Source of the DNA: Selaginella moellendorffii
Taxonomy: Eukaryota > Plantae > Lycopodiophyta
Direction: 5' to 3'
Assembly (NCBI RefSeq): GCF_000143415.4
Contig: NW_003314389.1
Location: 1 to 37,609, forward strand
DNA: 37,609 nucleotides
Made by a program: the position numbers and the translations under genes. A model generated the notes under the pieces. The model worked only from the letters and a program-made list of their open reading frames with translations. It made no database searches and was not told the DNA's origin. This document shows, piece by piece, positions 1-37,609 of this stretch; position 1 is the stretch's first letter; the number at the start of each line of letters is the position of its first letter.

Positions 1-133
1 AAAGAACATTAACACATTTGTGCATTTATGCAATTTTTCAATTAAATATGGAGGATTGTCATTTGCTCAATACATATGATTTCAATTTTAAGAGTAGGAA
101 TATACTTCACTCAAAGGTATATTATATTTTAAA

Positions 134-159
134 CTAGCAGGGAACCCAGCTCCGCTGGG
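134..159 (-). mobile_element. Helitron 3' terminus (hairpin + CTAG)
   Basis: Minus strand reads CCCAGC-GGA-GCTGGG-TTCCCTG-CTAG|T: a GC-rich hairpin 7 nt before CTAG followed by T, the canonical Helitron 3' end. It lies downstream of the minus-strand RPA gene. Confidence 0.9.
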
Positions 160-791
160 ATAGTTAGATGCTAATTCTAAAAAGAGAACAATTTATTAAA
201 TCTTGCTTAAGTTCAATATGTAACAAGCACTTGGTTTATTTAGTTTTTACTAAGTGATTGCAACCAAACACTATTTCTTAAATGTTTAACTGGAATAGAA
301 TAATACAAGCTTGGACTCAAAGCTTAAAAGAATTATTCAACACATGAAGAGGTGGCTCAATCATATTCCTCAATTTGGTATATTATTTGGGCATTCCAGA
401 GGTAAGAGTAGTTAATGGGATGGTATGGTAAAGGGTTTTTTGGTATAGAATGGCTGGTTTTGCATTTGCAAGCAAGCGATGTGTATTGAAGTATAAATGA
501 CTGTATTTTCTGGTGGTCTATGTGTTTGTTCATTATAACATGCTAAATTCTGATACAGTTGATGCATTTGTCATTTATTGTCCACTTGAGAATCATGTGT
601 TGTTGTTCTTTCCCTTTTTTAGTTTTTGTATCTTGACATTCCTTTCTTGCTACAGATAACCATCAAACAGAGCTGATGTTTGCTAGGAGGTGTGTTTTAT
701 TTTATTTGTTTTTGCAAGTTCCATGTAACTACAAAACAAAACACAGATAAATATATCAACGTGTAAAAGATTAGAATGGAATCTGCATACC

Positions 792-2605
792 TTAGGTGTC
801 AAGTCCAAGTATATAGAACCTTAGCTTCTCCATGTCTTGGTATTTTTCAAGCTTGCTCCGGATTTTGAATTTGTAAATCTTTGAGCGGATACCATCGATA
901 AGTAGTGAAAATGCAAGGTAGTTCTCATCTCGCATTGTAGCTAGTTCCTTTGCTGACATTCCCACTATTTCCTGTGCAGCCTCTTGAAATGCAATGGCCC
1001 ACACATGACTGCTACTATCCTCGATGCACATCTTTAGAGCATACTTGAACTCCAGACTCAAAATTGCAATAATTGCAGAACCAACCATCTGCTGTTCGGG
1101 TAGTTTTTTTGCCACATTGCCGTGCATTCACGACATTGATGCATGCATTATAGTAAAACTCATCTGTCTTCATTTCCTTCACAGTAGCTATCACTCTATA
1201 GATAGGGGAACTCTCTAACACCTTTAACTGCATGTTTGATATCTCTGATAAAGTAGTGGTGCAGCTAACAGTCTGTCTGGATGATGAAGTGCTCAAATGT
1301 ATGAAGTTAGTGACATTGTAGTACAATGTCATCCATTCTCTCAAATCAGCCACTGCTTCCATTTCCGGTTCAATAAGAATGGTGCTCACACCAATTGCTG
1401 AAAGTGATTTACCATTGTAGTCTGATACTTTTCCACCCTTGACACATATTATTGGCTGAACTCCACTGTCTATCCGCTCCTGTATATATGAGCCCTCTTC
1501 TTCTGCTTTTAAATCCCAGAGACATAGATCAACACTGTGGCCTGAATCATCACCTAGACACAATGTTCTCTTCTTCACAAAAGTTCCACTGTCACGAGAT
1601 GTTACTGTAATTGTACCAATCCATATTACGATACCAACCACATCGACAAAAGAGTCCCTTTCCTTCTGACACGCACTTAATATGCTTGTTTTTGCCAAGA
1701 CAATTCTTGGGAACGTTGCATCCTCATCCAAAGCTGTAAACACCATACCTTTGTTAGCCTGAATCTCCCATGTCACTTCAAATGGTGTGTATGCCTGATT
1801 GGAACGTCGTATTCCACCACTACCAGAAAATGAATACACTGTACCCTGTACAATCTTATCTGACAAAACCAAGGCACAATCATCGGAGCCAATAATTCTA
1901 ATCTCTGTTCCCTGGACATCGACAACGTCAAATGACATTATGCATCCAGATCTTTTCGTGTTGAAATGTATCAACTTGTTCTTGTGTGTGACTCTTGCAC
2001 GGAAGGACCACCTGTAAGAACGGTCACTGATTTCTTTGATGAACACCTCTTTTATGACGGCCTTTTTTGAGCTCTCTCCCTGTATCAAAGGGAACAAATT
2101 GAATAAACTGGTTTAGACGTGAAATACCTTTTCCATGGACTCCTGGGCTCGTTTTTGACCCTGGCAAGTTCAATTGTAGCAGTTATTTTAGAATTAAAAC
2201 CAAAGAAAGGACTTACCACTTTCATATCTTGAAGGATAGGGTTTGAGTGTGTGCGCTTCCATACTCCACCATCCAGGAAGCATGCATCCGAAACAATCAA
2301 TGACCTACAGAATATTTTGGTGTTTAAAATGCTCTGTCAAAAGGAAAATACACTTACTGTTTCCCATTTGTCTCAAGGAACGCGTAGTCCAGGAATTTTA
2401 CAAATGAATTCAGACGGGCACCACATGAATCTATTAAACTTGAAACTCGGTGTGATGCAATTGCCTCGAGTATTTCTCTGTCATCCGTGACAGAGAACTT
2501 CTTGGTCAGAGCACCAGGCTTTGAATCTATATTCGTCACACGCAACACGAGTTCCTCTTTCGAATTTTCTTTGACCCTTCTGATCCCATCATCTGTGCAC
2601 TTCAT
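792..2605 (-). pseudogene. RPA1: Helitron-associated replication protein A 70-kDa subunit (RPA1-like), one frameshift near 1050
   Basis: N-terminal OB exon (2358-2605). GT-AG introns at 2305-2357, 2161-2216 and 2080-2127 keep the frame. DBD-A/B motifs RWSFRARVTHK, FVDVVGIV and DDSGHSVDLCLW. DBD-C zinc finger FYYNAC..CGKK..WFCNYC. The C-terminus (KYALKMCIEDSSSHVWAIAFQEAAQEIVG) lies in a different frame. Confidence 0.92.
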
Positions 2606-2781
2606 GATTGTTCACGATAGGGTTTCTCCGTGATATCTGCTATATAATGTTCACATTTATCAAACCGTTGGCAACGTTGTTATCACTGCCTTGATGCATA
2701 TGCATTGGTTGAAATAATAAAATTTATTCTTGTATTAGTGGGAAAAAAGATTACGACTTTATCTTCCTCCTCCCTCTCCAG

Positions 2782-3235
2782 NNNNNNNNNNNNNNNNNNN
2801 NNNNNNNNNNNNNNNNNNNNNNNNNNNNNNNNNNNNNNNNNNNNNNNNNNNNNNNNNNNNNNNNNNNNNNNNNNNNNNNNNNNNNNNNNNNNNNNNNNNN
2901 NNNNNNNNNNNNNNNNNNNNNNNNNNNNNNNNNNNNNNNNNNNNNNNNNNNNNNNNNNNNNNNNNNNNNNNNNNNNNNNNNNNNNNNNNNNNNNNNNNNN
3001 NNNNNNNNNNNNNNNNNNNNNNNNNNNNNNNNNNNNNNNNNNNNNNNNNNNNNNNNNNNNNNNNNNNNNNNNNNNNNNNNNNNNNNNNNNNNNNNNNNNN
3101 NNNNNNNNNNNNNNNNNNNNNNNNNNNNNNNNNNNNNNNNNNNNNNNNNNNNNNNNNNNNNNNNNNNNNNNNNNNNNNNNNNNNNNNNNNNNNNNNNNNN
3201 NNNNNNNNNNNNNNNNNNNNNNNNNNNNNNNNNNN
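2782..3235. other. Assembly gap (others at 5793-6018, 13282-13381, 21953-22052, 31775-31973, 34133-34232, 35801-36133)
   Basis: Runs of N. Three are exactly 100 N and are probably of unknown size. Confidence 0.99.
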
Positions 3236-4733
3236 CCTTTTGTTACCAAGGTTTTAAGGACCAAAGAGGATTACAACGCCCACGGAAACGGATTGCGTCC
3301 AGATAAGCACAAAATTGTGTCTGATGCATCTTCCAACACTCGAATTCCAGCTACACTTGCTGGTTATGAACGCAACTACTGAACACCATTTTGATCCATA
3401 GCAAAACAGTTTGATCTTCGTTTATTTGTAGTGTAGAAACTTGATGCATTCTTAAGCTTTTATAGGGCAAGCGTGTGCGAAGGGAAACAACTCCCAGGAA
3501 AAACACTTTCCTTTTCTTTTTTTTTCATCTGATTCTTCGTCTGAAAATCAGACGAATCCAACCAGCTCCAACCAGCTGCTCAAAGCATGCGATCCAATAA
3601 GCCAGACAGTAGGGCATGCATGTGAGTTGGCCTGCGTAATCTCCATTTCCCGGTGGCTGTCTTGCACGGTTAAGGAAACCTTTTCAAAAATCTAAAGGCT
3701 GAAGATAACAGGTGTTAGAACCCAGCGACAAGTAAAAGATCCACACCTGATTCCGATGTAACTCTCGAACCACCCTCGTCCTACCCCAGCCGTTAAGCTG
3801 GAAGAGACAAATGGTACGTGAAAATTCAGTCGGGCATCATAAAGAATGTCTACTCCACCACCCTGGTACCCCGTGTCAAATGCTCGACCTGTAGCAGCAC
3901 CAGACATAAACAATCATACAAAATTGCTGTTGCTATCTGTATGGCTTGTTGTGGACGGTAGTCCTTGTACTGCTGCACCTCTTCCGCTCTCATCCATGTA
4001 CACTGATTGAACTGTGTCAGTTATCTCGCATTTTCTTCCATATTGTATCGCTCTTCCTCCTGGTTTCCTCATGGTTGCTAGTGTATGACTGTGATAATCG
4101 TCTTGTGCTGGATGATTTTTCTGCACAAAGAATGCTTGTTTCCGTGTCTTGTATGCTAGAAGTTGATGTTGTGTAATCCAGAAACACAAAAGTCAAGTGT
4201 AAGCCTTTTTTTTATGCAGGTTCCAAATGATTGTAATTCAGCAGAGCAATATTTCTATCTACCAAGTAGAGTAATGGGAACTATTGCAAACCATCGTTGA
4301 AGAGCTGTAATATTTAAAAATTACGATGCAAAAGCCAGTGCTACTTTTTCAAAGCTAAGAAATTGGTTCCCTTTCAACAAAGTTTGCTGCTGGGTTTTGC
4401 CTTTAAAGCAGAAGCTGGTGTGCCAAATCCAAACCCTTCACACTCACCCGAGGAGAGGAACTATGTCATGTGGTCTGTTACACAGGTGGAGCTCGTCCAT
4501 ACGTACATGGACTTCCTCTTCCATGGGGGCTGCTATCTGGTTCGGCTGGATGAGCTGTATTATTTGGATTTATTTAGTTTATTTTCTGGCAATTTGAAAT
4601 TTTTTTTATACCATCAAATTAATGATGAGAGGACCATAGTATAGATTAAAACTTTTTTCTCAATCTATTTTTTAATATCTGTAAGACATGATGTTTTTCC
4701 TTTTTCTCAATCTCATTTTAATATTTGTCATGC

Positions 4734-7547
4734 TCATTGAATAGCCCACCGCTTGATAAGACTTATCATTCCGTTCAGCTGTTGAATCTGTAATAATAAC
4801 AAATACAGCTCAAAAAATACAAAATCATCTGAGAGGGATTAGAGGAAGATCAAGTACATTCTTTTGGGTTTTCAGCAACTGCCATTTTTAGATGTGCCTC
4901 CGCTCTGAAATGGAAATTTAAAGTCAGAAATAGATACAATTCATACGTACTTCAGTGATAGTTCCCTCAATGTAGCTAGTTTAGGAAAGTCATGTATTGG
5001 CTGAGCATCTTTCAGTGTGGAGGTGATCTCAGTGTCTATTTTTTTTCTAAATAGAAACTCTGCCATTTGTGATTTTACATTCTGGAAATCATCAGATTTT
5101 GAGTTAGCTTAAATTTAATTTATGTTTCTCACAAATTTACACCAAATACCTTATCTATTTCATTAACAAAGTGAGATTCCGATGCCTTTGTTGCTTTTCT
5201 TTGAAAATGTTTGGTGTCCTCGCAATCTTAGGACAATGATTAGCATTGTGAATATATTTTAGCAAAGAAACATCATTCTTGTGTTAAAATGTTCTACCGT
5301 GAAGATGTTCTATTTGTTGTTCATTCTGAAATTGGTATAAAGTTTTTTCTTTATGCGTCATGTTTTTTTTCTCGGTAGCAAAAGCAACATCAGCAACTAG
5401 TCTATCAATCTGCTTTTTCTGAAAGTCCTTCCTGTGTAGAAAAAGAACTTAATAAAAAGGTATAAACAAGCAAGCCAACCATAATCTTTTCTGCATTATT
5501 TGCAGTTGATACTCTAATTGTTGAACAATAGGTGTTCTTTCAAATCCTTGTTTATCATGAGTGGGCGCCACAAAGTTTGCTTCCAAAACTCCTAAATAAT
5601 GTTAAAGAATGTATCAAAGATCAATAGTAGAATAGTAAAACTTGCCATAGACACCTCGCCCTTGTTTTCATGATGAATTCCATATTTTCCAAAAGGGCTG
5701 TCATATATTAAATGAGAAAAATGATCTTTTTGAATGATTGGTTACCTTAATAAGTCGGTTTTTGTGGTAGACATTAAATCCTTGTATATCTANNNNNNNN
5801 NNNNNNNNNNNNNNNNNNNNNNNNNNNNNNNNNNNNNNNNNNNNNNNNNNNNNNNNNNNNNNNNNNNNNNNNNNNNNNNNNNNNNNNNNNNNNNNNNNNN
5901 NNNNNNNNNNNNNNNNNNNNNNNNNNNNNNNNNNNNNNNNNNNNNNNNNNNNNNNNNNNNNNNNNNNNNNNNNNNNNNNNNNNNNNNNNNNNNNNNNNNN
6001 NNNNNNNNNNNNNNNNNNTATATACCTGCAAACCTGAGTGGATGAGAAAGTGTATTTTAAATTTTTTCTTACCCGTAATGAACTTTTGTACAGGAAAAAG
6101 TGTTTAATACTGGAATATTTTTTTGCCATTTCACATTGTATGTCATGTTGACCATTTCTAATTCAGATATCCTTGATGGGTGTCAGAAAAGTAAAATTTT
6201 AAAATATAAAACATACATGAGGATCAGATTTGAAGTCTAGTTCAATTTGTTGCTCGTCATTCTCCCATAGATTATAGATAATTATTCTTGTCCCTTGGTC
6301 ATTAATTTTCTTGAACTTGAATAGTAGAGACACATAACTTAAGATTATTGATCTAGAGTACCTACTTGGCTATGAATAGATCCTTCATTTTGATAAGGAC
6401 TCCATTTAGTGATTACGTCCATACGAATTTTCCAATCTTGATGTGTACATTTATGGATCTCTTTTAACTCAAGCCCATTTCCTTCATAATCCAGCTGCAA
6501 ATATGAACAATGTGATGTATACACATCTAAGAGAATTTGGAATTATAATATCTTGCTGCACTGTATCACGGAGAAAGCTATAAGAGAGTAATCCCACACT
6601 TTGAATAAATCTGTACACAATGTTAAATAAAGTGGCGAAAAATATGGCAGTCAACTCTTATACCTGTCACCTACTGCAGTGTTTGATTTTGAAAATACAA
6701 TGACATTTGCACCAAGGCGCATTGTACTTGTCTTGAAACCATTTCCATCTGGTAGTATAAATAATATTAAAAAATGTAAAAAAAAAGATGGCACTTACAT
6801 TGTCCAATTGTTCTACTGGTTGTGTCATTTACAGAATACCCAAAGGACATACATTGTCGCAAATGATCAAGAGTCATTCCACCACCATTGTCTAAATTAA
6901 CAAATACAATGTTACTTGCATAAAGAAAGAAAAAAGGAAAAAAAAAATGTCTTACAAACCTTCAAACAGAAGCATTGGCGTGCCATTAACTGGATTCTTG
7001 AGAACATCTATGTTGGCAAATGTCACTCCATTTGTTGTCTGGTCGAGTGCATTATCAAGCAGCTTTGCTATTGCTGCAAAAAGTGTAAGATCATGCATTG
7101 GAAAGAAAAGAGGAACAGTGATATGCCTATTTGAATTACCACCAAAAGCCCACTTGTGGCTTCTTGCGTTAGAATGAAGGAATTTGGGATGCATTCGTAC
7201 GTGGTCCATTCCAGCTACAAAACCACGTAATGAGTTACTTCCTTAAAAGGCAGTCATAATGAGCAAGGACCTGGCATTGTTTGTGCATTAGAACCATCGT
7301 AATTTCCTGCTTTCCAAAACTGGGAACATTGTCTTGGCTGCTGTGTACAAACAACTGTTTTATCATTCTGTGCGGCATCCCCCTGAATTGGGAAAAACTC
7401 AAGAAAGTCGGCAGGCATGCACTCAATTTTAGGTTTCTTGTACTGGTTGCCGGCAACACCAGCTCTTTTCTTTCCAAAATTGGTGGACTTGTTTAGAATC
7501 AGACAGGGATTGATGCCTCTGGCAGTGAGCTCTTCGTCCCCTCCCAT
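4734..7547 (-). pseudogene. MORC: Microrchidia (MORC4/5/7-like) GHKL ATPase, multi-exon, near full length, at least two in-frame TGA stops
   Basis: Spliced translation gives, in order: [164 protein letters not shown]. Stops at 6163-6165 and 5668-5670. Part of the gene lies in gap 5793-6018. Both ends are approximate. Confidence 0.95.
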
Positions 7548-8384
7548 CCTTATGTGGGCCTTCAAGCACTCAATGATACAGTTTGAGAATGCAAAAGTTA
7601 CAGAGATTCAGAAACAGTGCAACTAAAGAAACGTGCGTAACATATAGTCTGGTGTCGTTTTGTTGAGCACACATATACCTAGATGCATAATGCCCTGTCA
7701 CGACACAATTTTATTTTCTAATTGAGTTTCAAGTGTGGTCTTTTGAATGCAACCTATTCTGTGACCACACACCAATCAAATTCATTTCTAATCTTTCCAA
7801 TTAAAGACACATGGGTATCATAATCATTACAAACAACTGTTCACTGTTCATTTTTACACTGCTTGCTGATCATTTGTTTCTAAAGTCTTACAATCTTGTC
7901 ACTGATAGCAGTCCTATTTTCACTCTTGCAAAGAGATGGAATTCCAATTGGAATAGTATGTATTCTCCATTCGAGTGGGATGGCCGTTCCTGAAACATTT
8001 TTTTTTTTCTGTGAAAAGTATGGTGCAATACCTCAGCCAAGCTGGGAGACAACAGAGCCTAGAGGGCATGTATACAAGTATTAGTTACTGGGTTTGTGTT
8101 TTTCTGGTAACTGAATATCATGCACCACTACAAGATTTGAAGTCCATGTTGTGAAACTTTAGAAGCAACTTTGTTTTTTGCTGGATCCTTGGATAAGCTG
8201 TGATCATTTCCAGCACAACTCAATCATCAATTTGATGGTATGTACTGTTTTAAGGACATATTGAGTTTTTTAGAACAAAAAGAATGTGCAGCCAGAAACT
8301 TCTCTTAGGCTTTCAACTGCCTAGGTAAAATGGAAATCTTATTTTCTTAAGAGCCAATCATGCTGACTTTTGATGGGCATCTGC

Positions 8385-9310
8385 AGTGGTTTTTTGAGCA
8401 GTGGGAGTTGGAAGTGAAGGGAATTATATGCTGGCTGGGTGAGTTCTACCTTTTCAAAGTCAGTTGATAAAATTATAAACTACAAATTAACTTTATAAAC
8501 GATAGAGTTCTACTTCTTCCGTTATGTTTTCAGAGGTTTTTACATGCAAATGAAAGACCGCTAGGTTGCTATGCTGGATTGGATTGCCAGGTGCGGTCAG
8601 GCAAGAGAAACAGGTCTTGTCCCCACATTCACGTGCAACATTCCTCTTTTTTCTTTCCTCTGCTACCTGACCGCTTCTCTGTTTTGGGCTGCTCCCAGAT
8701 TCGGGTTGGAGTGATCGAGCAAGATGGATCCATTAGAGTTAATCAGAGCTTCACTTTTGACATCAAGGATCCAAATGTACAATTTTTGCAGCTTTGCAAT
8801 TTTTTTCTACTGACGAGTTTGGGTGGTTGGGCAGAATGCAGTTCTGCTGTTACACGTTGTTTCTAAGACACGTTTTGGAGGAGAAGACTCGCTTGGGATT
8901 TCTACGGAAGTTCGTGTTGCTGATCTTCTCGTTAAAAAGGGAGGTCTGAGGAAGGTGTCTTTTCTCCTTGTGCCACCTTATTGCTCTTTTTCATTTCAGG
9001 TGGTCAAGATGGAAAAACCAAGTGGTATGATCTTTCTGGGAAGAGATTAATGCCGGGGAAGGTGATCAGTCTGTTCGCTTGACTTTTAAAAATGTTCGTT
9101 GTTGTCGTGTATTTGCAGGTTTTAATGGACTTAGATGCAAGAATAGCTGAACCCGAGCATGATATCAGTGTTTTCTTGGGTACATGGAATGTAGGAAACG
9201 CAAGACTGGTATGTCAGCTATAATTCTGGACCAATTTGCTGATCTTTGGCAGCTCAGGCTGTGGATTTGTCATCGTGGCTTATTACAAAGAGCAAGCATG
9301 CTGAATTGCT
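8385..9310 (+). pseudogene. Captured multi-exon fragment of a C2-domain + inositol polyphosphate 5-phosphatase gene
   Basis: Spliced: LEVKGII..IRVNQSFTFDIKDP..LLLHVVSKTRFGGEDSLG..VADLL..KWYDLSGK..GKVLMDL (C2-like). This is followed by EPEHDISVFLGTWNVGNA..DLSSWL, the start of a 5-phosphatase catalytic domain, and then truncated. Confidence 0.75.
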
Positions 9311-9840
9311 CTAAGAAACCTTTACTTCTTCTTGGTACATGTCCATTTCATTTGAGGATTCAAAAAGTGCAGTGTCACCTCCTTTCCTTTGTTAAAAAAT
9401 ATAAATAAAATACAAGAGATCTTTTCCAGTGTTCATCAAGGGGAATTCGTTTTCATTTTGTCATCAAAAGAAAACTTAGTATCAAGAAGGTAGAGCAAGC
9501 AATGGGCAGAGACTGACCACCACAATTCCTATAAGCCCGTGATTGGAGTTCGTTAATGATATCAACATTGAAGCCACGTAACAAAGGTAGTGTGGGATTA
9601 AACTTGCAAGCTTGGTCCGAATTTGTTTTGAAGCAGGTTCATTCCAGTTCAAAACCAAGTCATCCACGTTTCATAGACATTCTAACCTTTGATGTCAATC
9701 TAATAGAAATTGGTTAACTTAAGTACAGAGTTTTCATTACCAGCGTAAAGTTGATATACACAGTTGTAAGGTTATGGTTTATATAACCATTTTATTTTGA
9801 GGAGCACTTGCATTTTTTATTTACTCCCAGTATAAGCCCT

Positions 9841-11935
9841 TCATTTTTTGGATGATGGTGCAAAACCAATTACATCATTAGATACATCTAGCAGAAACCT
9901 CCCCACGGGTGGATGTTTTATCATTTGTGTCTTGACATGTGTCGAATCCTTTTTCCAGCTCGTAAGAATTGGTTCTTTAGAACCGTAAAGATGATCAACT
10001 AAGTATGATGGAATGTTAATATCCCTGGTCATATTTTCCACGTGTATCTTCCCCTTTAAAGTCATAAGCTGTTTCACTGGGCCAACATACTTGCACACAG
10101 CACACACTGCAGTGTCTTTAGATGTTCTTTGTGTCACATGAGCTGCAAACGGTATGGATAAAAATAGGACGCAGCCTATCTATCTCAAACCATCCTGGCA
10201 CCTGTAATTGATTTGATGTCTGTTTTAGCATGTATTATATCTCATGTGGCTTACCCCATTACAACATATAGCAAGACTCCGGTATAAGGCTGTTAAAAAA
10301 TGGTTCTTTGCTGGATCAAGTATGCGTGTGACGATAGTCATTCCAGAGACATTCGCTCTTTTAAATACACCATCTCCTTGTAAGTTTATAAAGCACCGGC
10401 TAGGAGCAGTTTCCGAAAGGAATTCATTTAGCATCTCTCTGAATATATATATATTGCTTGCTAGGAATTTTACCTGGCATAAGTAAAATTGGGATCTATC
10501 AGTAATAGAATAAGTAAGTAATTATTCTATTACAGTTAACGTGTCGCTGGAGTCTCCATTGTCTGCAACTGTGATCTCAGCAGTATTATGTGCTAGGCTG
10601 TTGACCTTAATCATGACAGCTTCAATAGATCCAATTGAATCACGTCCCCTATGCATGTTAGTAAACTCTGCTATGCTTATTGTGGGCACAGAAAGTCGCA
10701 ACAAAGGAGGACTGTGCTGGAATTCTTCAACTATGGTTGTGTCCATGATCTTCAGAGTAAATCCCCATGTCCCCCTATCATATTTTGGGACTGTGGGGAT
10801 AACTTCAAAACCATACAACTTGAGCCATTTTCCTCTGGTAAATTCCTGTGCACGTTTCTTTGCTACTTCGTGGAACATCCATACAGTAATAGTTTCAGTG
10901 CCACCAAAGTCAGTCATGTCTACACGCAGTCGATTGCCTCCATGCACAATGCCTCGTTTGAGACCATAGCTGTTGAGTGTATACCCTGCAAACATTAACG
11001 TGCTTGCACTCTCGTCAATGCCAGTTATTTTGATTGCTGATGAGATTTCCATATGTTGGAGTTGCTTGATGTTTGTAATTTGTTGTGTTTCCATAGAAGA
11101 TAAAGCTACAAGATTTTATCGAGGTTAGTAATTCTACAGTTTGTTTTCTAAATTACCTTGACCAACCGAAACATTAGCTGTATATGCAATGGAGTCTTCC
11201 CTGTGCGTTTCTTCATGAGGTGTTTCATCTTCGTTTGAAACATATTTCACATTTAATTATTCTTAGCTAAAACATAACATACCTCCATCAGTAGCTAATG
11301 CTCTTGATTTCAGACAATCTAATTGTTATTAAAAAAACATAGAAAGTAAAAGAAATGTTTGGATGGACTTTAAAATAACTTTTTTTTTGCAATTTGTACC
11401 TTCATTAACAACGCTGGTGTCTTCCTGACATGGTTCTGTAACATTGAAAAAAGAAAGATTGCAAGTGTTTAGAAAAAATAGTAAAGTCAATTTTTTTTGC
11501 TTTGTAACCTTCATCGATGATGGCAGTATCTGCCTTTTTTGATTCCGATTGGTCTGTAGGAATTTAAAAACTTTTAGGAAAACAAAAAAATGAAAACTAA
11601 AGAACAAGTGTAATATTGTTCTACCTTTTCCTTGCATATTCTCAATTTCCATCTCACATGGTTCATTTGGTAGAGCAACTCTAATAGGTGCTTTGTGTTT
11701 TCTTCTTTGAACCTCAGCTGTGCATTCTTCAATGCAATCCCTGGAAATTCAGGCAAACTAATAACGAAAATACCTTCTTCAACATCATTTATCGGAGGAA
11801 TTGTGGTCAATGTGTCTTTAAGCCTCTTTCGATTGCTCTTCTTGGTGCCTTTGAAGGTCCAAGCACTTTAAAAATAGCTTTGGAAATGTGTGTACAAACC
11901 AAGAGTGTCTCTTTCCATCTCTTTATCGTTACCTG
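9841..11935 (-). pseudogene. Second, highly divergent RPA70-like tandem OB-fold protein with C-terminal CxxC..CxxC zinc finger; frameshifted
   Basis: The 190-aa ORF 10522-11094 has a DBD-A/B-like pattern (RVDMTDFGGTETITVWMF..A..F..G..L.GFEV...KY....L.I...TIVEE; SIAEF; ITVADNG..LT). The last exon has CSSC...CAVC split by a frameshift near 10120. Several short upstream GT-AG exons extend to about 11935. Confidence 0.65.
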
Positions 11936-12179
11936 ACCTAAAAATAAAACCCTCTTTTAAAATTAATAATATTTGGACAAATGTGAAAGGTATCTAGAGA
12001 GGGCAATTCATTAGACGATCAACAAATGAGTTCAGCAGTTGTTATCTAGGTGGATCACTCGGGTGAAAGGAAGGATATTGTATTTTATGGCTGAGATACA
12101 CTATAATGAGGTATATGGTCAATACTTTGGCCCGAACTAAATGTATACTTTGGCTGAATATTGTATTTTATGGGTGAGC

Positions 12180-13278
12180 ATTGTGTACATCAGCCCAGTT
12201 TGCGGCGTTGCCAATTGGCCGCTTCATGGCTGCACTATTGCCCACCAGGGTCTACTACACGGGCTCAGGGTTTTTCACTCAATCCAGGGCTCTTCATCAA
12301 GAAGGAGCGTCTTCATCACCATCTTCACCAATGTTGGCTCTGCAGTTGGGAATGGTGGTGTTTGTGCGGTCTTCATCATCGACTTACCATAACTTCCTAC
12401 AGGATGAAGTTCCATTTCTACAATGAGCTCTTGCTGGTGATCACCACTCAGGTAAGAAAACAAGCTTTTCTTGCTTGCTTTCCTTTGAAGTGTTTTGGTC
12501 GAAGTCAACTTGGATGGGCTGGTCTTTTGCGAAAGAATCTGGTGGAGCTACTATCTCGCGTGATTATATCATGAATACTATCTTGCGTGTTCGACAGGAC
12601 TTTGCATGACAAGGTAAGCGTTAAGGACCTGTCAAGGATCTAGTTCTTCCTCTCCTTTGTCTTTGCGTACTACGCACTCCCGTGCTACTTCCTCAGCATT
12701 CTCTCCTCCATCCCTGGGTTTGCTGGGCCTTCTCCATCTCGGTCCTGGCACAGCATCTCAGGTTGGGCTTCCAGAAGCTTGGCCTCGACTGGGATCTGCA
12801 CAGAAATCCTCTTGTCCTCTATTCTTCATCATCGCAAACGTCATCATGGGCTACATATCCTTATTGCTTACATAATGTTGTCAGCTTACTAATGGACCAA
12901 CTTCTACAATGCCAAGAAGTTTTCAAACTTCTCTAGCTACCTGTTTACGTCTAAGGGCCAGTTCTACGACATACACATGGACATGGAATTTTTTGAGTCT
13001 GTAGTTATTTGAACAAAGATCATGGTTTCTATCCATTGTCTCAATAAAGTGATTTTGACTTCAGAATTATGCTTTTACATCAGCTTTCCTTTCAAAGCTA
13101 TTTCTAAGAGTTCCATGGCATCTTTAAACGGATTGTAGTCAAAAATTACTTCAGCATGATTTGGATCAATTTGCATCGCTATTCCTTCTAGTCGAATTGG
13201 ATGCCATTCTCTAGGATTTATTTTCTGATGTAAATCCGTTAGTCTCTCTAGGAGCTTTTCCGACATGTTTCGATTCAT
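12180..13278 (-). pseudogene. Heavily degraded long reading frame of unknown origin
   Basis: More GC-rich, coding-like stretch. The frame containing ORF 12275-12508 extends in both directions through several TGA/TAG stops. No motif recognised. Confidence 0.3.
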
Positions 13279-13546
13279 GCGNNNNNNNNNNNNNNNNNNN
13301 NNNNNNNNNNNNNNNNNNNNNNNNNNNNNNNNNNNNNNNNNNNNNNNNNNNNNNNNNNNNNNNNNNNNNNNNNNNNNNNNNACTGCATTATACCGTTGGT
13401 TTTTGTTGTATAGATCCTCTGGATCTCATTTTTCTTTGGAAGCTCATTTCTTTTTCTAACTATTTTGCTGCTTAATTTTTCAGCTATGACAACCGCCAGG
13501 CCTGTGAAGTTAGTTGCCAGTTTCGGAATTCAATAAATGTTAATGT

Positions 13547-13896
13547 TCAATAATTACCTGAAGTGACATCTTCATTTCTATGGAACTTGCGGAAACGTCG
13601 AATTTTTCTTTCATATTCATCTATGAGCCTAGAACAGCCTTGTCTTGTGTCAAAACCATAAATATAATCTTCTGGTGCACATCCCATGACGTTTAGATAT
13701 CTAACCTGTTTATCATTAGGATAGAACCTACAGAAAAGAGAACAATATGAATCATACATCAAAGTATAATATCACACCTTTGGTTTATTTTTGTGTCACG
13801 ATTCCATTTTCGTTCTTTTGCCTTGTCATTCAAACTTTTCAGTGCTTCTTCCCATTTTTCATCTTCCCCCATTTGTATCTCTTGTGCTTCACTCAT
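13547..13896 (-). CDS. Small spliced orphan gene (5' exons), hypothetical protein
   Basis: ATG at 13896: MSEAQEIQMGEDEKWEEALKSLNDKAKERKWNRDTKINQR, then a ~50-bp GT-AG intron, then FYPNDKQVRYLNVMGCAPEDYIYGFDTRQGCSRLIDEYERKIRRFRKF, with no stops. The 3' end is unresolved. Confidence 0.5.
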
Positions 13897-14641
13897 GTTG
13901 CCGCTATGACCTAGATATGTAAGTACATGTCTTTTCATTTTTCTTACTTATGACACGTCATCTGCTGCATACGTTACAGTTTGGACAGTGTATGTTTAAG
14001 TTTTTGACATTGTCTAAAGTCGTAAAGTTATCATCAACATGATTGAAGCTTTGCAATTTTTTTTTACAGATGAATGGTCTTGTTTGGATGCTTTACATTC
14101 TTTGATCGGAATATGGTGGTTCTGGTATATAGCAGATTCTTATATATTAATGTTTCTGTAATAACATATTGTTCTTAAAAGGCTGGTATTCGTAGTAGAT
14201 TTCTTGCAAGCTCTGGTGAGAGTAGTGAGCTTTGTTACAATAAAAAGATGTAGATGTTCACCTGTTGTGGCATAGCAGTTTTTAGGTTTCTGCTAGCTCA
14301 GTTCTTAATTAATATAGTAGTACATGTTTTATACATTTTAATTAATAAATTTTATGTTAATTATTTAATATTTGAATCTATATTCGTCATACCTAACACT
14401 AGTTGCTCAATCAAATTTTATTTGGGCTTTTCTGTTCCCATTCTCAATGTTCTTCATGATCTTTCATGCTATAAATAGGTATATATATTTATTAAATATA
14501 AATATATGCTTGTTTATAGGATGATTAATTCCACATATACTTGCTATAAGGAACATGATGTTAACATTAACATATTTAGACGTAAAATAAGGGTTAAAAA
14601 TAATTAAACATAAACTAAGGTTTTAAAACACATCTCCTAGG

Positions 14642-15215
14642 ATACATCACCACTATTTGGTGGTAATACTCCTACCTGCTTCGGTGATAGCGCTCTATTG
14701 CATGTAATTATGCTACAGTGCATTGTCAAGTGAGCCGTGAGACTACAATTGAATCGGAGTGCCCACGCTCATCATGGGAATGGCCACCACACTTATCTCC
14801 GTGATATATTCTTCAGAGTCTTTGACCACTTTCCTGTCTTTGCCAGCTCCTCATCGCAAGGAAGGTAACATTAGAGCAAGGTTGTGATTTTTCTACTCAA
14901 TTCTTCTTCCAGAAGCTCCTTTGCAACCTTTGCTCTCAAAGGGAGATTTCAAAAACAGCAACAAACTAAGCAGCACTGGATCTGAGCACGACTTCAACGA
15001 AGTAAAGAAGCTGTCCCAGCACCGTCTTGTCACGTACATCTACTCATTCTTTTATCTTTTTGCAAGTATCTACTTGGCTATGTTGCTCACTAGACCGGGA
15101 TGCTATTAACGTTGGCTAGCTTTCAAAATGGGTCCAGATTGGCACAATGTGGTTCACAGCGGCACTATACATTTTGTTGCTCATAGCTTCACTCATTTTT
15201 TCAGCGCTGTTATAT
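14642..15215 (+). pseudogene. Captured C-terminal fragment of a Serinc (serine incorporator/TDE) membrane protein gene
   Basis: LLPASVIALYCM*LCYSALSSEP*DY, LIMGMATTLISVIYS, VTYIYSFFYLFASIYLAMLLT, INVG*..WVQIGTMWFTAALY. One intron. Several stops and deletions. Confidence 0.88.
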
Positions 15216-15306
15216 ACATATCACATGGGCTGTTCCTTCATTTCCCTTTTTTATCTTATAAAAAACATAAGCATGAAGCATCACTTGTTTCTTTTTTCCT
15301 ATGAAT

Positions 15307-15600
15307 CTACAGTGGTGTTCTGCTTCCAGGGTCTTTATCAATTTTTTGCACTGAAGCAGTGAGATTTCCATCTTTATCTATGTTTATAGTGGATATGTCT
15401 CCGATTTCACTTCCATGATTCTTTAAGAATATCTGCCAGTTTGTATTGGTCTCAAATATGTTGTCGTTTTTTGTACCAGAGCACAGTTTGAACATGAATT
15501 CAGATGTTTCATCGAACACACAGATAATGTTTTGATTGTTGCAGCGGAAACAGTCTTCCGTAGTTTTTCTTGTCAATTCGTTTGGAAACTCCTAGTGGTT
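15307..15600 (-). CDS. Possible B3-like DNA-binding domain fragment
   Basis: RKTTEDCF..ICVFDE..FMFKL....N....NWQIFLKNHGSEIGDISTINIDKDGNL resembles the B3 pattern W..FVK.NGL..GD.I.F..D..G.L. Confidence 0.45.
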
Positions 15601-15738
15601 TTCAAATATTTTTTTCTACAAATTATAAAATACAACACGCATACATACCATCAACAAAACGCCTTTGCAGAAGTGGAAAGGACGAAGAATGAATGAAAAA
15701 TTCATTCTATTTGACCTAAACCTAACTACCAGTTTCAC

Positions 15739-17147
15739 ATGGAAAAGAACTTTGTTCCCCCCAATCTACCCAGAGATGTAGTTTTCAGAATTGCAGAAAG
15801 CAATGGCTTTTGTAGCGCAGTTTTTTCATGTGTAGCTAAAGAATTTTACATGGAATTTCAAAGTGATAGAATTTGGCAATTGCATTGTGAACAGGATTTT
15901 TCTGTCTACATGTGTACAGATTACGAAGGTAGACACTGCAGAACGTACAAGGTTTGTATTTTCACTTATTTGCTTAAAACAAATGTCAAACTTTGCTACA
16001 GGAAACTTACAAGAGTTGGTTCAATGTGTTCAAACGCTACAATTATAATATTACCTCTGTAACCAGAAAGTTGTGCCTTAAAATACGAAGCTTCCTCAGA
16101 TTTAAAGGTTTTGAGTACATGTCAACCAAAGGTTTACCAAATAACGTCATAAATGAAGCGGAGGCAATTTTGAATGTCAACCTTCCAAATTCTTTAAGAT
16201 GTCTACTGCTTTCTATGGATGGTCAGCCTGAAAATTGTATCATCAGTGGTTTACAGCATCAAGAATACAGATGTTTTATTGGTACTTATTGGACCTGCAA
16301 TACATTTATATGCTCGAAATTACTTTCACTCCGAGAGATTTGCTTGTTCACCATAGACTTGAGATTATCTGTGCCTTGTTTCCCTGCTAACTTGGTATCA
16401 TTTGGTTGCTCGTTGGATGCTTCAAAAATTTACTTTATAAATGTTCATTCAGGTAATGTAAACTGAACGTTAAAGAAGTCTCATTAGTAATTGGCTGAAC
16501 AGGTGATATTTTCATAACTTCAAAAGATTTCAGACTCAATTCTGAAGTTATGCTGTGTACACCTATATCTGTTTGTGGTGAGATGTCACTCATTTGCTGG
16601 CTTGCAAAGCTTTCATCTAATCTGCATACTGGAAAATCTCGTTTAATTCAAAACCCCATTAAAGCTATATTTCAAGGTGGTTTGGCAGCAAATAGACTGT
16701 ATCATGTAAGGCTTTACCAGTTTGTTCTTTGCTAATTCATTGTGTCTATGTCCTTTAGCATGGTTGTGTACCAATACCGAAGTTGTCATCCTTTGCTAGT
16801 GATGAGTTTACATATGTAGCATTTATATGCATAGATTCAGAATACCTCTCGCTGTACAACAACATATACCTTTGTGCATCACACAAGTCAAAAAGTAATG
16901 TTAATGATACTCTTTTGCACAAATTTAGCATATGGTTTGGTTCTCAAGAGGTAAGCATCTTTACTTGGTATTATATAGATGATAAATTAGTGTACAGGAG
17001 TATTGCTATGATGGAAGAACATATGGTGTCATGACTAAAACATTTACATTGGAAGTTCCACTATGCACTGTGTGGGTTGCATGCAAGTCGAAATCAGAAA
17101 CTTTGACTAAATCCCTGGATGTATCTTTTTTGGATTATATGTTTTAA
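15739..17147 (+). CDS. Divergent SKIP16-like F-box protein (F-box + SMI1/KNR4-like + degenerate ApaG region), apparently intact, ~402 aa
   Basis: Exons 15739-15951, 16002-16452, 16503-16705, 16759-16950 and 16998-17147 are joined by 47-53 bp GT-AG introns into one stop-free frame. Motifs: LPRDVVFRI..SCVAK..SDRIWQLHCEQD, YKSW...F..Y, EAEAILNVNLP..LR.L....DGQ, LLSLREI, KIYFINVHSG, LICWL, and terminal DYMF* (cf. SKIP16 DYIF*). Confidence 0.8.
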
Positions 17148-17228
17148 AGCAGTTACATTATCGTTTCATAATATTATATTCACTTTGATACTCCTCTCCC
17201 ATTTAGTATTGTCTCTCTTTGACCTAAA

Positions 17229-17456
17229 ATGGAACAGAAGGCCCATAAATGTCCTTTTGGCAGCTCTGTTTGCACGAGATACGAGGATTGCTTGCTCTGT
17301 GGATTCCAGAATTGTGCAAAGTCATATAAGATTTGTAATTCATTCAAGCGATGTGAATATTGTTTGTTTAAAAAAGCTGTTCTGAAATTTCAAGATCAGC
17401 ATGGAGTCCAAGAGAAAGATGCTTTGAAGGAAGTTTCAAAAGCTTGGAATTCGTAA
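17229..17456 (+). CDS. 75-aa Cys-rich hypothetical protein with HMG/YABBY-like C-terminal helices
   Basis: Intact ATG-stop ORF with 8 Cys (including CLLC and CEYC), then LFKKAVLKFQDQHGVQEKDALKEVSKAW. Confidence 0.4.
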   Translation: MEQKAHKCPFGSSVCTRYEDCLLCGFQNCAKSYKICNSFKRCEYCLFKKAVLKFQDQHGVQEKDALKEVSKAWNS

Positions 17457-17851
17457 CTAAAAATTTGCAAGTATCATGTAATCACCAAAGTCATCAAACC
17501 ATGCTCATTGGCTTTGGCAACTAATTCATTTTATGTTCTAGCTTTTTCTTGGGGACGATTTACCAACTACTACATCTATTTGACATTTCTTCCCAACTAC
17601 ATCACATTTTTCTGGAGTTTTGTCTGTGGCATTTGATTGTTACCTGTCCAACACCTCGATTTGATGGTGAGTAACCTTTACCTTGCAATAGACTGTAGTG
17701 ATTGGACATTGGCTCCTATCGCAAACCACCCCAATTTGAGCTGTTAGTAGTTTCTGTCACAACAAATAAATCTGTAGCATGTGGATTTGCCCATCAAGGA
17801 GAAGTGGTGCCAAGAGAACCCGGGCAGTGTATACCAAGCTCCAAGTGAGGC

Positions 17852-20800
17852 TTAGAAGCAAGCTCGTGAATGTGTTATTAATGTATTGAATAGAAATGAT
17901 TTTCCTGTTCCTCCTACATCATCGATAGAAAATATTTGTGGTTCATTTTTATCATCCAATGCTTTACATACTTTGTCAAAGACATATTGTTGATCTTTAT
18001 TCAGTAACAATTTGTTTCTTTCAATATCTTGGTATTCAAACATTTCATTCTCATATATGTTGGTTCTTTCTTTATTATTTTCTAGATATGTAGTACATGA
18101 TATAGTAATATCATAATCTGAAAGGCATTTCCCATGTTGTTCTAGTAAAAGAGACAACTCTTGAAGTGCATGTGCATATGCTACATCCTCATCATTGTAT
18201 TTACGTATTAAATCCTCACACATATCTACTTTGTATTTATTCCATAATTTTTTAGGATCATTAACCTCACAAAAGAGACACATTATTCCAAATAAATATC
18301 TAATTTTAGAAGGCATTTGAAATGTGAGAGACTCCTCTAGACATCTATCCCATTCTTGGTCATCCTGTAATAATCCCATCGTTTGTGCAACTTCTCGATA
18401 GCTATCATATTGTATGTTTTTCCAATTACGTAAATGTTTAAAACTTGTTGCACCTTTATTATACAACAATAATAATCGCATATAAAATCGTTCACTATCT
18501 TTCGGTGGTACAGTGTACATTCTACCTATAACTTTCCAACCTCGTTGTCTTTTTACCCATGTTTTGTTTTTTGCATTCCAACTATACCATTCCGGAATTT
18601 CTGGATATGTTAAAGTTCTTGCAAATTCATCTCTTTTATTCAATTCAAACCATTCAGTAAGTTTTGTTCTATGACCTTTCTCTAATGCAATTTCTTCTTC
18701 ACCTTCATTGAAGTAAACACTTTGCAAATTTGGTAAGTGCACATCTAATCTTTCAATTGAATGTGATCTTCCATGTAAATCATATCCAAATAACCTCCAC
18801 ATTCCTTCAGCAGTTGATACATAACGGCAATTTTTGAATGCATTTATTTCATTCCAATCAAGAATATTCTCTTTCTCTGTGTTTCCTTCTTTGTGAAAGT
18901 GTATCTCTGCACAATCATGGCCTTTATATATATATTTAAAAATATATTTCACACTTTTCACAGTTGAGCAAACCTCTACATTAATATGAGTTTTATATTT
19001 ACGCAAAAGATACTTACTATAAGGAACAACAAACCTATTATCAATTTCATTATTTTTAATGTAGATTTTATGACTATCATAACGTCTTTTATACTCTGGG
19101 AATTGGCCACTGATATTTTTTGTCTCTTCATAGTAATCTCATGGATATCGAGATTTACATTCACCTTTTTTGTAACATGGACTTTCAGGAAATCCAGGAC
19201 CACATGGACCATGTATCATATGTTTTTTCACAAGTTCATACAATTCAGGATCACTGTTTGGGTCTGGTATTTCTGCACTAACAATGTTGTCTACATCATC
19301 TACGGTTTTGATTTTATTCTCATTTTTAAGAATTACAAGTAGATGACAATGTGGTAGTCCTCGTTTTTGGTACTCAATTACATACACATATGCATTAACT
19401 TTTCCAAATATTTCTTCTTTGTATATGTCATCTATAAGTTTTTGTTTTTTAGCATGGAAAACACGTGCTACCAAATCTGGTCTGTCTGAAGAACTTTGTC
19501 CTAGTAATAAATTCTCAGTTATCTCTTGCCATTTTGGGTTACACGTCATCGTAATAAATAAATCAGGTTTTCCATATTTTCTTACTAAGCTCATAGCGTC
19601 TTGATAATTTTGATTCATATTTCTCGGTCCACCGATAAATCCTGATGGCAAAATCACAAGTTTTCCAGCATGTATCCCTTGTTGTTCTGCTCTGTTTATA
19701 ACAAAATCAGAAAGACCTCCGTATGCTTCAGCTCTTAATTCTCGTTGATGGTTTTTTATCCAATCAAGACGACCACCCTCTACTTTAGTGTACATGTCAA
19801 CCATGTATTGTTGGGATAATTTTCCACCCATTAAAACCGAATTAAATTCAATAATCTTAATACTATCTCTTATTAAACCACGAATAGCAAACTTGTAGCG
19901 ATAATACTCCATCATTGTTATCTTAGTTTTTTTTAAAGACAAACCCTTGTCTGTGTATTTTAAATCTGGTGACCAGCCTTCATTTCCATTTGGAAAAAGC
20001 AGTGGATATACCATAGGATCACAACATGATGTCACAATTGATATCTCTTGCATACTTTCACCTTTCGGATGTATTGCAATACTACAGTTAAATGGAGGCT
20101 CCCCAGTAGGGTTTGTAAACACTGCAGGAACTTCATTTGAATTTGGTGCATTATATCTTCTTGGATCTATTGTATTTTCACCTTTTATATACATTACAAT
20201 ATTATGTAGTCCATTATTTATATTTGAACTTGTCATATGAAGCTCATCTTCCACATCTTTTAGCATTTTAAATGCCTTTGCATATGGATTAATTTCTCGT
20301 AATAAAGCATCTAATTCATTCATCAGTGTTGTATCACATTTACTGTTATATTTACTTTTCATTCTTGTTTCTGTAGCTTCTAGTGTGTCTAAAATATAAA
20401 GTTGAGAATATTTTGCATCATGACCTTGCTTAGGACGGAAACTGCCAATTGAATGATATACTTGTCCATGAATTTTGAAATAATATGGTCCATTGCCAAT
20501 CAGTTCATCAATATTTGCCCCCATAGATGCAAATGCCAAAGCACTATTATAATTTCGAATTAATTCTTTGAATTTTCCTCATTGGTCTGTTCCATCTAAT
20601 AATTTACAAATCAGTTCAGGGAACTCATTTTGTTTTTCTATAGACACACGTCCACCATGACAGCATTGTGATTGTGTTACTGAAGCAAAAAGAAAAGCTT
20701 TACAATAGTCACAATGTTTGTCCATGAGTCCAATATAATCTACTTTACATTTACCGTCTATGTTGTTTTGCAAGAGTCCTAAATGTTTAGTGTTTTCCAT

Positions 20801-21055
20801 GCTCTCGGTTTCATTTCCAAGATTTACTTCATTAACAGGTAGGGTAATAATTTCAAAAGTGTTTCTAAAAGTCTTTTCTATGGGTATCAATCTTGGAATT
20901 GTTGGGGGTTCTTCAAAGGATACCAGGTTTCTCACACTTACATCCATGCTTCTATTCATATATAGAGATGAATTCAAAGTTGTTGAACTTTTTTTTATTA
21001 TACAGCCTTCATGTAAAATTAGATCACATGTTTTCCTCTTTCTTTTGCCGCCCAT
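17852..21055 (-). pseudogene. Helitron Rep/helicase (HUH Y2 Rep + start of PIF1 helicase), two in-frame TGA stops, truncated just after Walker A
   Basis: ORFs 20579-21055, 19139-20539 and 17852-19006 share one frame, with stops at 20579 and 19139. Zn finger CDYC..CCHGG. Rep motifs PDLFITMTCNPKW, YVIEYQKRGLPHCHLL, HMIHGPCG and KYIFKYIYKGHD. GGTGKSFL is followed by loss of homology. Confidence 0.97.
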
Positions 21056-21559
21056 TGATCTGTAGGAGATTTTACAATCTCTTTTAGAAAATAGAAGCTT
21101 AGACAGCGTGTGCAGGCTCTAGATGGTGAAAATAAGTAAATAGACTAATAGCCAAACCACAAGAAAATAGAAGCACACTGAAACAAAGTGCTGGCAGAAG
21201 CACAGCTCCTTAATATGATGCTTGGGGTCCCTATACTTTGGAGCAGAACAACATTACAAAGCCGGGAAAAACAAAGCTCAGGAAACATAGAAACAAAATT
21301 ACCTCTTGACAAATGCGAAAGCAACCTAATTGTGTAGTCCTTTTTTCTATGATTTGAAACAGTTTTTCTTAGCCTACGTGTCTGTTTAGGTACACTCTCG
21401 AAAAGCCTTTGACAGTAAAGAGTTTTGCCACAGCTTTTTCTGTCAATCATTTTTTCATTTGGGGCAGAATCATTGCACTTGGGGATAAAAAATTACAGAG
21501 TCATACCGATATGATAGCCCGGGTTAAAAGATTACAGAGGGTGAATCTCTTTTGGCAAG

Positions 21560-24884: not shown

Positions 24885-25235
24885 ATCGCCCTAAAAGATT
24901 CACTTGATTTGGAGGGTCATCAAATTCAAATTTTAAAAGTTGCCACCCCTTGGAACTTTGATCTATGCCATCTATTTTAAGTTTTTGAATTTGAACCGTT
25001 AGATTATAAGTATATTCAAAAATAATATTCTAAAAATGGAATAAAAGACGCTGGATGCCATATGCCAATAGCACGTTTAAATAAGGGAGTACTAGCAAAA
25101 GTCCCAGCTACGCTGGGAGCATCATGTTTATTCCTGATGTTTTAGTAATTTCAAAGAGTTGTAATTGTAATTGTAATTTTTAACATAATCATTATTATAG
25201 CATACATAATTAAACATAATATAATATTTATATTG
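24885..25235. repeat. ~350-bp junction segment repeated at ~36276-36620
   Basis: Highly similar sequence from ATCGCCCTAAAA through GAACCGTTAGATTATAAG, GGGAGTACTAGCAAAAGTCCCAGCTACGCTGGGAGCAT and ATAATATTTATATT. Confidence 0.95.
25092..25118 (-). mobile_element. Helitron 3' terminus (unit 2)
   Basis: Minus strand TCCCAGC-GTA-GCTGGGA-CTTTTG-CTAG|TACTC. Confidence 0.9.
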
Positions 25236-36475: not shown

Positions 36476-37609
36476 CTAGCAAAAGTCCCAGCTACGCTGG
36501 GAGCATTGTGTTTATTTCTGATATTTTAATAATTTCAAAGAGTTGTAAGCGTATTTGTAATTTTTAACATAATCATAATTATAAGATATATAGTCAAACA
36601 TAACATAATATTTATATTAAAAATATCTTCAACAATTGACTCCATCACCAACAAACATCATAACATAATAAATATAACTCAGTACATTATATTATATTTA
36701 AAATTCTGATTGTTGACTGAAGTCTTGGATATTCTATAAATGGAATTTCTCACTGTGGGATCCCATGGCCAGATGAGTCATTTTTATTAACTAATTTTTT
36801 CTTTTATTTGAAATCTCTATATAATTGATAAAAATCTTATTATTTGATGATTTATTAAACTATATAATTTCTCCTCTTAATAAAGTATGTGTTACTTAGG
36901 TACACTCAATTATAATTATGTTAAAAATATATTTAATATATATTTAAAAACTAACTTAAAGTGCATACAACTTTTTAATTTAAAAAAATATAAACATTGT
37001 TATGGAGTTTCTCTTTTCATCATTTGAGACTGAAAGTTTTGGAATTGCATAATAATAAGTGAAAGACGTTAGCTTTATGTGTTATATTTTCTTTTAAAAA
37101 CTTTTAATATTTTACATATTTATCATTGATACTCCCTTTTTACATAATATTTATATTCATGCATTTTGAGATTAATATTTAAAATAGAAAGTATTCTATT
37201 ATATATCATAAACATTAATTCTGTATTTAGTTTTATAAATCTAAAATAATATTATTATTTATTTATATTCATGCTTTTATATTTAAAATTAAGGCTTTAT
37301 AACACTGTCATGAATGCTGAAACTTTATGATGTTAAATGAATGGTAATGTTTTACTCTATACTGGGGTAGAGTAGGGTTTGATGATATATAATCTTGTCT
37401 TTATGCTAGAGCTATAATATATCAGAAAATTCATGAATGGTATATAGATAGGTTTAATATCATATAATTAAAATTCTGTATATGGTCCATGTACTAATGT
37501 TGTCTCAATCATATTTATACCTTATTATGTTTTTCATGTATAAATGCAATGTAGGATAAAGTGGTAGAAAATTTATGATATTATATAAAACCTAGACTAC
37601 ATCTTAGCC
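36476..37609 (-). mobile_element. 3' portion of Helitron unit 4 (runs off the window)
   Basis: CTAG at 36476-36479 and hairpin at 36486-36502, identical to the unit 2 terminus. Confidence 0.85.

Follow-up and report, generated by a model that had tools for sequence, protein, structure and literature searches.

How does a nearly whole gene for a host factor that silences transposons come to lie inside a transposon, and has it served the transposon there? The question is raised by a stretch of 37,609 nucleotides from the lycophyte Selaginella moellendorffii (contig NW_003314389.1 of assembly GCF_000143415.4, positions 1 to 37,609; the whole stretch is called the window below), where a gene of the MORC family occurs within a Helitron. 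Our analysis suggests that this gene is a decayed copy of a gene derived from the host MORC7, which a Helitron family carries as cargo beside its RepHel gene and an RPA-like gene. It also leads us to think that the captured MORC7 was probably selected as an accessory gene encoded by the element. Fragments of genes in Helitrons are known to decay quickly, and the gene captured here is nearly whole and encodes a transposon-silencing factor.

The first step is to establish what the gene is. On the minus strand of the window, from position 7547 to about 4675, stop-free pieces carry the motifs of MORC proteins in the expected order, and we confirm that this region is a gene with a GHKL ATPase and an S5 domain inside a Helitron. 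We compared it with three sibling loci (L001, L002 and L003) from assembly GCA_000143415.2, which gives four MORC copies including that of the window. Among 1.84 billion representative proteins, the full-length one most similar to this MORC is MICRORCHIDIA 7 of S. moellendorffii itself (XP_024528529.1, hereafter host MORC7). HATPase_c_3 and Morc6_S5 score above the Pfam cut-offs in gene models of the siblings: HATPase_c_3 is found in the models P0155 and P0156, and Morc6_S5 is matched in P0155 (E 6e-26) and also in exon 13 of the window copy (E 5e-12). The structure of the MORC3 ATPase could be aligned to residues 14-331 of one sibling model (E 6e-39). In the siblings and in their consensus the GHKL motifs follow each other in order (N-box E/N/D, G1 DxGxG, G2 GxxGxG), and the S5 domain after the ATPase is of the MORC type. 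Together with the exon map, these matches bear out the sequence-only reading of this DNA, which had described a multi-exon MORC gene with GHKL and S5 motifs in order.

The exon map is that of the host gene. Host MORC7 has 19 exons, 18 of which can be recognised in the Helitron copy. Exons 1 to 14 of the window track the host map, with splice sites kept except for the donor of exon 6. Exons 1 to 10 (6019..7547, minus strand) encode the GHKL ATPase and the start of S5; they lie at 7547-7271, 7214-7140 and 7073-6960 (exons 1-3), 6891-6799, 6748-6664 and 6610-~6537 (exons 4-6), and 6494-6366, 6315-6217, 6171-6073 and from 6025 into an assembly gap (exons 7-10). The end of the S5 domain is encoded by exons 11 (in part, 5829 to 5746), 12 (5697-5646) and 13 (5591-5480). 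Exons 14 to 18 (5431-5298, 5226-5150, 5081-4951, 4904-4858 and 4787-~4675) form a diverged linker, of which the last two exons have left the host frame. All of these exons are on the minus strand, and the splice sites of exons 14 to 18 are taken from the host map, without support from RNA. With host-like splicing the reading frame ends near 4675, rather than at 4734 where the earlier reading had placed its end.

The C-terminal part is disrupted in all young copies. Compared with host MORC7, these copies lack 68 nt of exon 16 and 29 nt of exon 17. Their exon 18 is shifted by +1 and contains a stop when read in the host frame, and exon 19 can no longer be recognised. The frame obtained with host-like splicing runs to its stop outside the frame of the host coiled coil, and we found no plant-type C-terminal coiled coil in the Helitron MORC. 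The helical C-terminal tail that had been reported from the letters alone does not hold as a coiled coil, since the host frame is lost in exons 17 and 18 and there is no recognisable exon 19.

Could the gene simply be the host's own MORC locus lying between Helitron insertions, or a chimera made by the assembly across its gap? The gap (5793-6018) lies inside the gene, where it takes up the larger part of exon 10, all of intron 10 and ~40 nt at the start of exon 11, and the window contains other Helitron ends, both of which would fit such an explanation. Against it, the run of 226 N in the window has exactly the length of the matching stretch in L002 and L003 (226 bp; 221 bp in L001), and contigs from an independent DNA run (X1) extend into it at either side, where their free ends agree with the siblings at 27-30 of 30 letters. 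Given this match in length and these bridging contigs, it is very likely that the gene runs on across the gap without a change of register. The letters of the window within the gap are absent, so any lesions of the window copy there fall outside the lesion counts given below. Furthermore, host MORC7 lies elsewhere, among PPR, HSP33 and SRP54 genes, and three other loci, each with flanks of its own, repeat the order of MORC and RPA or RepHel sequence along as much as 19 kb. There is also no Helitron terminus between RepHel and MORC: a hairpin-like candidate for an internal 3' end, at 8032-8046, matches with one mismatch, is not followed by CTAG, and lies in a region where the siblings are collinear, and we rejected it. 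A host locus beside Helitron insertions is refuted by the location of host MORC7 and by the repetition of the element elsewhere, and we regard this explanation as a whole, chimera included, as extremely improbable.

The sibling loci speak to the mobility of the gene. L002 and L003 are 96-98% identical to, and collinear with, positions 130-19185 of the window. The Helitron 3' terminus at 134-159 (minus strand) consists of the hairpin CCCAGC-GGA-GCTGGG followed by CTAG; it ends at 134, and the next base is T. Hairpin, CTAG and the following T occur in the three copies (window, L002 and L003), with a small deletion in the hairpin of L002, and the AT-rich flank is unrelated in each. They agree with what marks a Helitron 3' end, i.e., a hairpin, a CTRR terminus and insertion next to T without target duplication. 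In L001, which is 87-91% identical, the start of RepHel is joined directly to MORC, and this locus is an older deletion derivative of the Helitron. A further gene model, P0161, is a fifth copy of the Helitron MORC. Collinear siblings, a common hairpin-CTAG end and unrelated flanks together indicate that the MORC gene is cargo of a mobile, multi-copy Helitron. The location of the gene within a Helitron, co-oriented with RepHel and the 3' end of the element, is as first described, all three being on the minus strand, and the copies sought within Helitrons beside RPA or RepHel exist, since three other loci repeat MORC with one or the other. As a separate observation, 26% of the words sampled from 6020-7600 of the window occur in a sequencing run assigned by its label to another organism (B), and three air-metagenome runs hold 11% of them each. 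Near-identical copies thus exist outside the reference sample.

Where did the gene come from? The Helitron MORC shares with host MORC7 the N-box, G1 and G2 motifs, the S5 domain and the positions of introns 1-13; all 13 introns are kept at identical positions and with similar lengths. In a maximum-likelihood tree with MORCs of lycophyte, fern, moss and seed-plant origin, the Helitron copies group in a clade of their own (100/100), the kind of clade for which the sequence-only reading had proposed to look, and the sister of this clade is MORC7 of S. moellendorffii (100/100). The stem leading to the Helitron copies is long (0.90, vs 0.11 for the host), and 63 amino-acid changes polarised with 19 outgroups fall on the Helitron side vs 20 on the host side. 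Over the ATPase region the sibling gene models are 66-70% identical to host MORC7, and no closer MORC was found among the 1.84 billion representative proteins or in length-limited searches. Retention of the introns rules out a retro-copy and argues for capture as genomic DNA, and the Helitron family appears to have taken its MORC from the host MORC7 locus in this form. We found no host flanking DNA alongside the captured gene. In plants and animals (maize, Brassica, bats), too, Helitrons copy host genomic DNA, introns included, within their termini (PMC4224331, PMC11986588). The genome also holds a predicted protein of 160 aa named MICRORCHIDIA 4 (P0002, XP_024521937.1), with 86% identity to host MORC7 across exons 2-3. 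This fragment resembles the host gene more than it does the Helitron copies and may stem from a separate duplication or capture.

The gene of the window is no longer functional. Two stops, a lost splice donor and the change of a catalytic residue indicate that this copy is a pseudogene and cannot make a MORC protein. The first stop is a private TGA in exon 9 (6163-6165), where L002 and L003 have CAA, the X1 contigs CGA, and L001 TAA; the second is a private TGA in exon 12 (5668-5670), where the siblings and the X1 contigs have CGA. A private deletion of 17 bp at 6536/6537 has removed the end of exon 6 and the donor of intron 6. At 7063-7065 the catalytic Glu of the N-box has become Lys (AAG), a change private to the window, as L001, L002 and L003 have GAG and an X1 contig has the letter of GAG at 7065. 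All of these sites are on the minus strand, and a further private change turns Asp into Asn in GADVIVF, at about 6705-6707. Apart from the TAA of L001, the X1 contigs and the siblings have sense codons at both stops of the window, Glu at the site of the Lys, and the 17 bp retained. The two in-frame stops and the lost donor leave the window without an intact, expressed MORC gene of the GHKL type. This contradicts the earlier impression of few lesions, given the two TGA stops, the deletion of the exon-6 donor and the Glu to Lys change. That Lys might be taken for a designed "dead ATPase," a possibility ruled out by its being private to the window copy.

The other copies are damaged in their own ways. 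L003 has four stops and has lost the donor of intron 13 and the acceptor of intron 15, in L002 there are two stops and two acceptors are gone, and L001 has several stops and six frameshifts. The lesions differ from copy to copy in all four, and many of them are C to T or G to A changes (CGA to TGA, CAA/CAG to TAA/TAG), as expected from deamination.

If every copy is broken, was the gene ever kept by the element? Several signs point in this direction. No stop interrupts the 523 codons of exons 1-14 in the consensus of the three young copies, and exons 15-18 of the window read through without a stop under host-like splicing. As reconstructed from these copies, their ancestor evidently had an open reading frame (ORF) of ~645 codons with host-like splicing, the ATP-binding motifs and S5, and no in-frame coiled coil. 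Between consensus and host gene the synonymous divergence (dS) is ~1.12, which is saturated, and the nonsynonymous divergence (dN) is 0.21, for a dN/dS of 0.19. Four indels separate the coding sequence from that of the host (-9, -12, -12 and +9), each a multiple of 3. The consensus has canonical splice dinucleotides at 25 of the 26 sites of introns 1-13, the remaining one being a GC donor in a strong GCAAGT context; across the four present-day copies, about seven splice sites have been privately lost. Helitrons typically capture short pieces or chimeras, and these decay immediately, in contrast to the 18 of 19 exons found here, with frame and splice sites intact over a dS of ~1.

The history of the copies within the element adds to this evidence. 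We polarised the changes between L001 and the young consensus with the host gene. On the stem of the young copies, 13 changes are nonsynonymous and 16 synonymous, and stops, frameshifts and splice losses are all absent, vs 41 nonsynonymous changes plus 7 stops and 10 synonymous changes on the dead L001 branch (Fisher p 5e-4); the neutral share of synonymous changes is ~0.26 at the observed transition bias. A codon branch model written for this analysis, with separate omega for stem, internal and terminal branches, gave 0.235 for the host-Helitron stem, 0.23 for the internal branch and 0.75 for the terminal branches, with four copies and one internal branch. An omega of 1 on the internal branch was rejected at p 0.013, and the terminal branches look neutral, a contrast whose direction is that expected for a gene kept by its element. 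Helitron-specific changes at 20 of 173 invariant columns could not be cleanly separated from the rate at variable columns, and we did not use them as evidence of constraint. From these signs it seems rather likely that purifying selection in the lineage of the element kept the MORC gene readable and spliceable. A gene so kept would be an accessory gene encoded by the element and not a dead passenger. The three outcomes set beforehand as speaking against the sequence-only proposal are not what we found: the gene is not a single copy syntenic with a host MORC locus, its dN/dS is not near 1, and it does not lie outside the element.

These results should be weighed against another possibility, namely that the gene is a neutral passenger captured recently from a diverged, unsampled MORC7-like donor. 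The donor could have been a lost paralogue, or the gene of another Selaginella reached horizontally, and the constraint that we see would then be inherited from it. Several observations favor this explanation and weigh against selection by the element. All four copies are broken at the DNA level. The exons of L001 and of the young consensus (7.0% divergence) are no more conserved than their introns (5.8%). The internal and terminal values of omega differ only at p 0.07, and the test on the internal branch rests on 29 polarised changes in four copies. The time of capture is not fixed, and part of the constraint on the stem could predate it. In addition, 20 residues at which the host and 19 other plant MORCs never vary have been lost from the consensus, and the ancestral protein may for this reason not have worked as a MORC. 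The gene also left little trace in RNA. Three RNA-seq runs from 2026 (~9 million records each) gave 0-2 partial reads, in a search that had no positive control, and the sampled words are absent from fifteen transcriptome assemblies of S. moellendorffii. The transcripts sought to back the sequence-only reading were not found, and as far as the sampled material shows, the copies of today seem to be silent.

Other observations fit a recent passenger poorly. At the protein level, the Helitron branch has evolved at 3-8 times the rate of the host branch, unlike an orthologue under normal constraint, and the large protein library and the length-limited searches hold no closer MORC that could represent the donor. 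The consensus was already AT-rich and CpG-depleted: its GC content is 38%, vs 50% in the host coding sequence, and the observed/expected ratio of CpG is 0.46 for the young consensus and 0.17 for L001, down from 1.02 for host MORC7. Such a composition fits a long stay within methylated DNA of a transposon and speaks against capture in the very recent past. The low omega of the internal branch, which has no stop, frameshift or splice loss, also contrasts with the many lesions of the terminal branches. Hence, we consider a neutral passenger unlikely. The purifying selection proposed in the sequence-only reading is supported by the open consensus, the low dN/dS, the internal omega and the splice sites, and is tempered by the four copies available and by the p value of 0.07 against the terminal rate.

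What could such a gene do for the element? If selection on an accessory gene is the right reading, the product would be a MORC with an ATPase head and an S5 domain and without a tail. The structures of MORC3 and MORC2 show that the ATPase heads dimerise upon ATP binding and that the coiled coils dimerise constitutively. Given this mode of dimerisation, a tail-less paralogue 66-70% identical to the host protein could form unproductive head dimers. On binding ATP, the protein encoded by the Helitron might pair head to head with host MORC7, and the absence of its coiled coil would block the cycle of compaction and silencing by host MORC around the element. The tail-less MORC would then be a dominant-negative weapon against silencing by host MORC7. 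Of the functions considered we find this one the most likely, yet we put it forward only tentatively, as a rather doubtful option. Less likely, the protein could be a DNA clamp that helps the replication or transposition of the element. A decoy, a poison subunit and a DNA clamp had been named as possible roles in the sequence-only reading.

A different kind of benefit would come from the nucleic acid itself. If small RNAs directed against the element also hit host MORC7, silencing of the element would be penalised, in a form of "camouflage" that has been described for captured plant genes (PMC13317346; bioRxiv 10.1101/777037). It would be fitting that the donor is itself a silencing factor. 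However, the longest exact match between the coding sequences of host and Helitron is 20 nt, so cross-targeting by RNA must now be minimal, and an open frame, in-frame indels and an omega below 1 would remain unexplained. We therefore find camouflage very unlikely as the reason for which the gene was kept.

The carrier Helitron spans ~25 kb of the minus strand, from a 5' end at 25091 to the 3' end at 134. The RepHel ORF (17855-21118, minus strand) matches Helitron_like_N (E 2e-61) and the start of PIF1, and is interrupted in frame by stops at 20579-20581 and 19139-19141. At 17793-17862 the window lacks ~1.9 kb that is present in L002 (L002:1324-3218) and carries most of PIF1 (E 8e-37). The two parts of a RepHel, an HUH Rep and a PIF1-type helicase, are accordingly found in the window and in L002, respectively. 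With its two RepHel stops and the missing PIF1 stretch, the Helitron copy of the window is non-autonomous.

The neighbors of MORC are only partly those that had been expected. The sequence-only reading placed the gene between two RPA-like genes. The downstream one (795-2611, minus strand) is confirmed by REPA_OB_2 (E 2.3e-19) and Rep_fac-A_C (E 1.3e-17), and an RPA-like gene likewise lies 3' of MORC in L002 and L003. The upstream one is not: the ORF at 10525-11115 (minus strand) has only sub-threshold matches to OB folds (DUF223, E 0.045; tRNA_anti-codon, E 0.09) and no similarity to the downstream RPA-like gene. Its counterpart in L003 (L003:5172-7530) has an annotated product of 501 aa, with no Pfam family above threshold and weak hints of an OB fold. 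Between RepHel and the OB-fold ORF, the plus strand holds at 15715-16463 an F-box-like ORF and, after it, a weak match to SMI1_KNR4/SUKH (E 1.8e-4). L002 and L003 carry this F-box/SUKH gene too, which makes it further whole-gene cargo of the same element.

At its 5' end (25074-25091, minus strand), the element starts with TACTCCCTTATTT... and abuts the CTAG of the 3' end of another Helitron. L001 has an identical 5' end, beside a (TA)n flank. The 5' sequence shared by the window and L001 starts with TACTCC, i.e., TA vs the canonical TC, and its first base belongs either to the element or to the flank. The same junction is seen twice in the window (25091-25117 and 36475-36501), where a hairpin-CTAG 3' end is fused directly to TACTCCCTTATTTAAACG. 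The doubled junction suggests head-to-tail arrays of Helitrons or repeated insertion beside the end of a sibling.

How does the Helitron MORC compare with known systems? It differs from host MORC7 in being multi-copy, AT-rich and CpG-depleted, in its rapid protein change with loss of 20 invariant residues, and in a coiled coil that is out of frame. Transposon accessory genes that act on epigenetic silencing by the host have been described, namely, VANC in VANDAL (Mutator-like) elements and genes for TET/JBP dioxygenases in fungal Helitrons and other DNA transposons (PMC5735166, PMC10398659, PMC12730594). Neither VANC nor TET/JBP is a copy of a host silencing factor, whereas the Helitron MORC is a copy of one, with a role that is hypothetical. 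In full-text literature searches we found no report of a MORC gene in a Helitron or in any other transposon.

What the finding means depends on the constraint. If the latter is an artefact of the few copies, or reflects a recent capture, the gene is an unusually complete but otherwise ordinary Helitron capture. If the constraint is real, the family would offer a natural tail-less variant for the study of MORC dimers. It would also differ from VANC and TET/JBP, which have no counterpart among host silencing factors, and it would imply that transposons can recruit the silencing machinery of their host as accessory genes.

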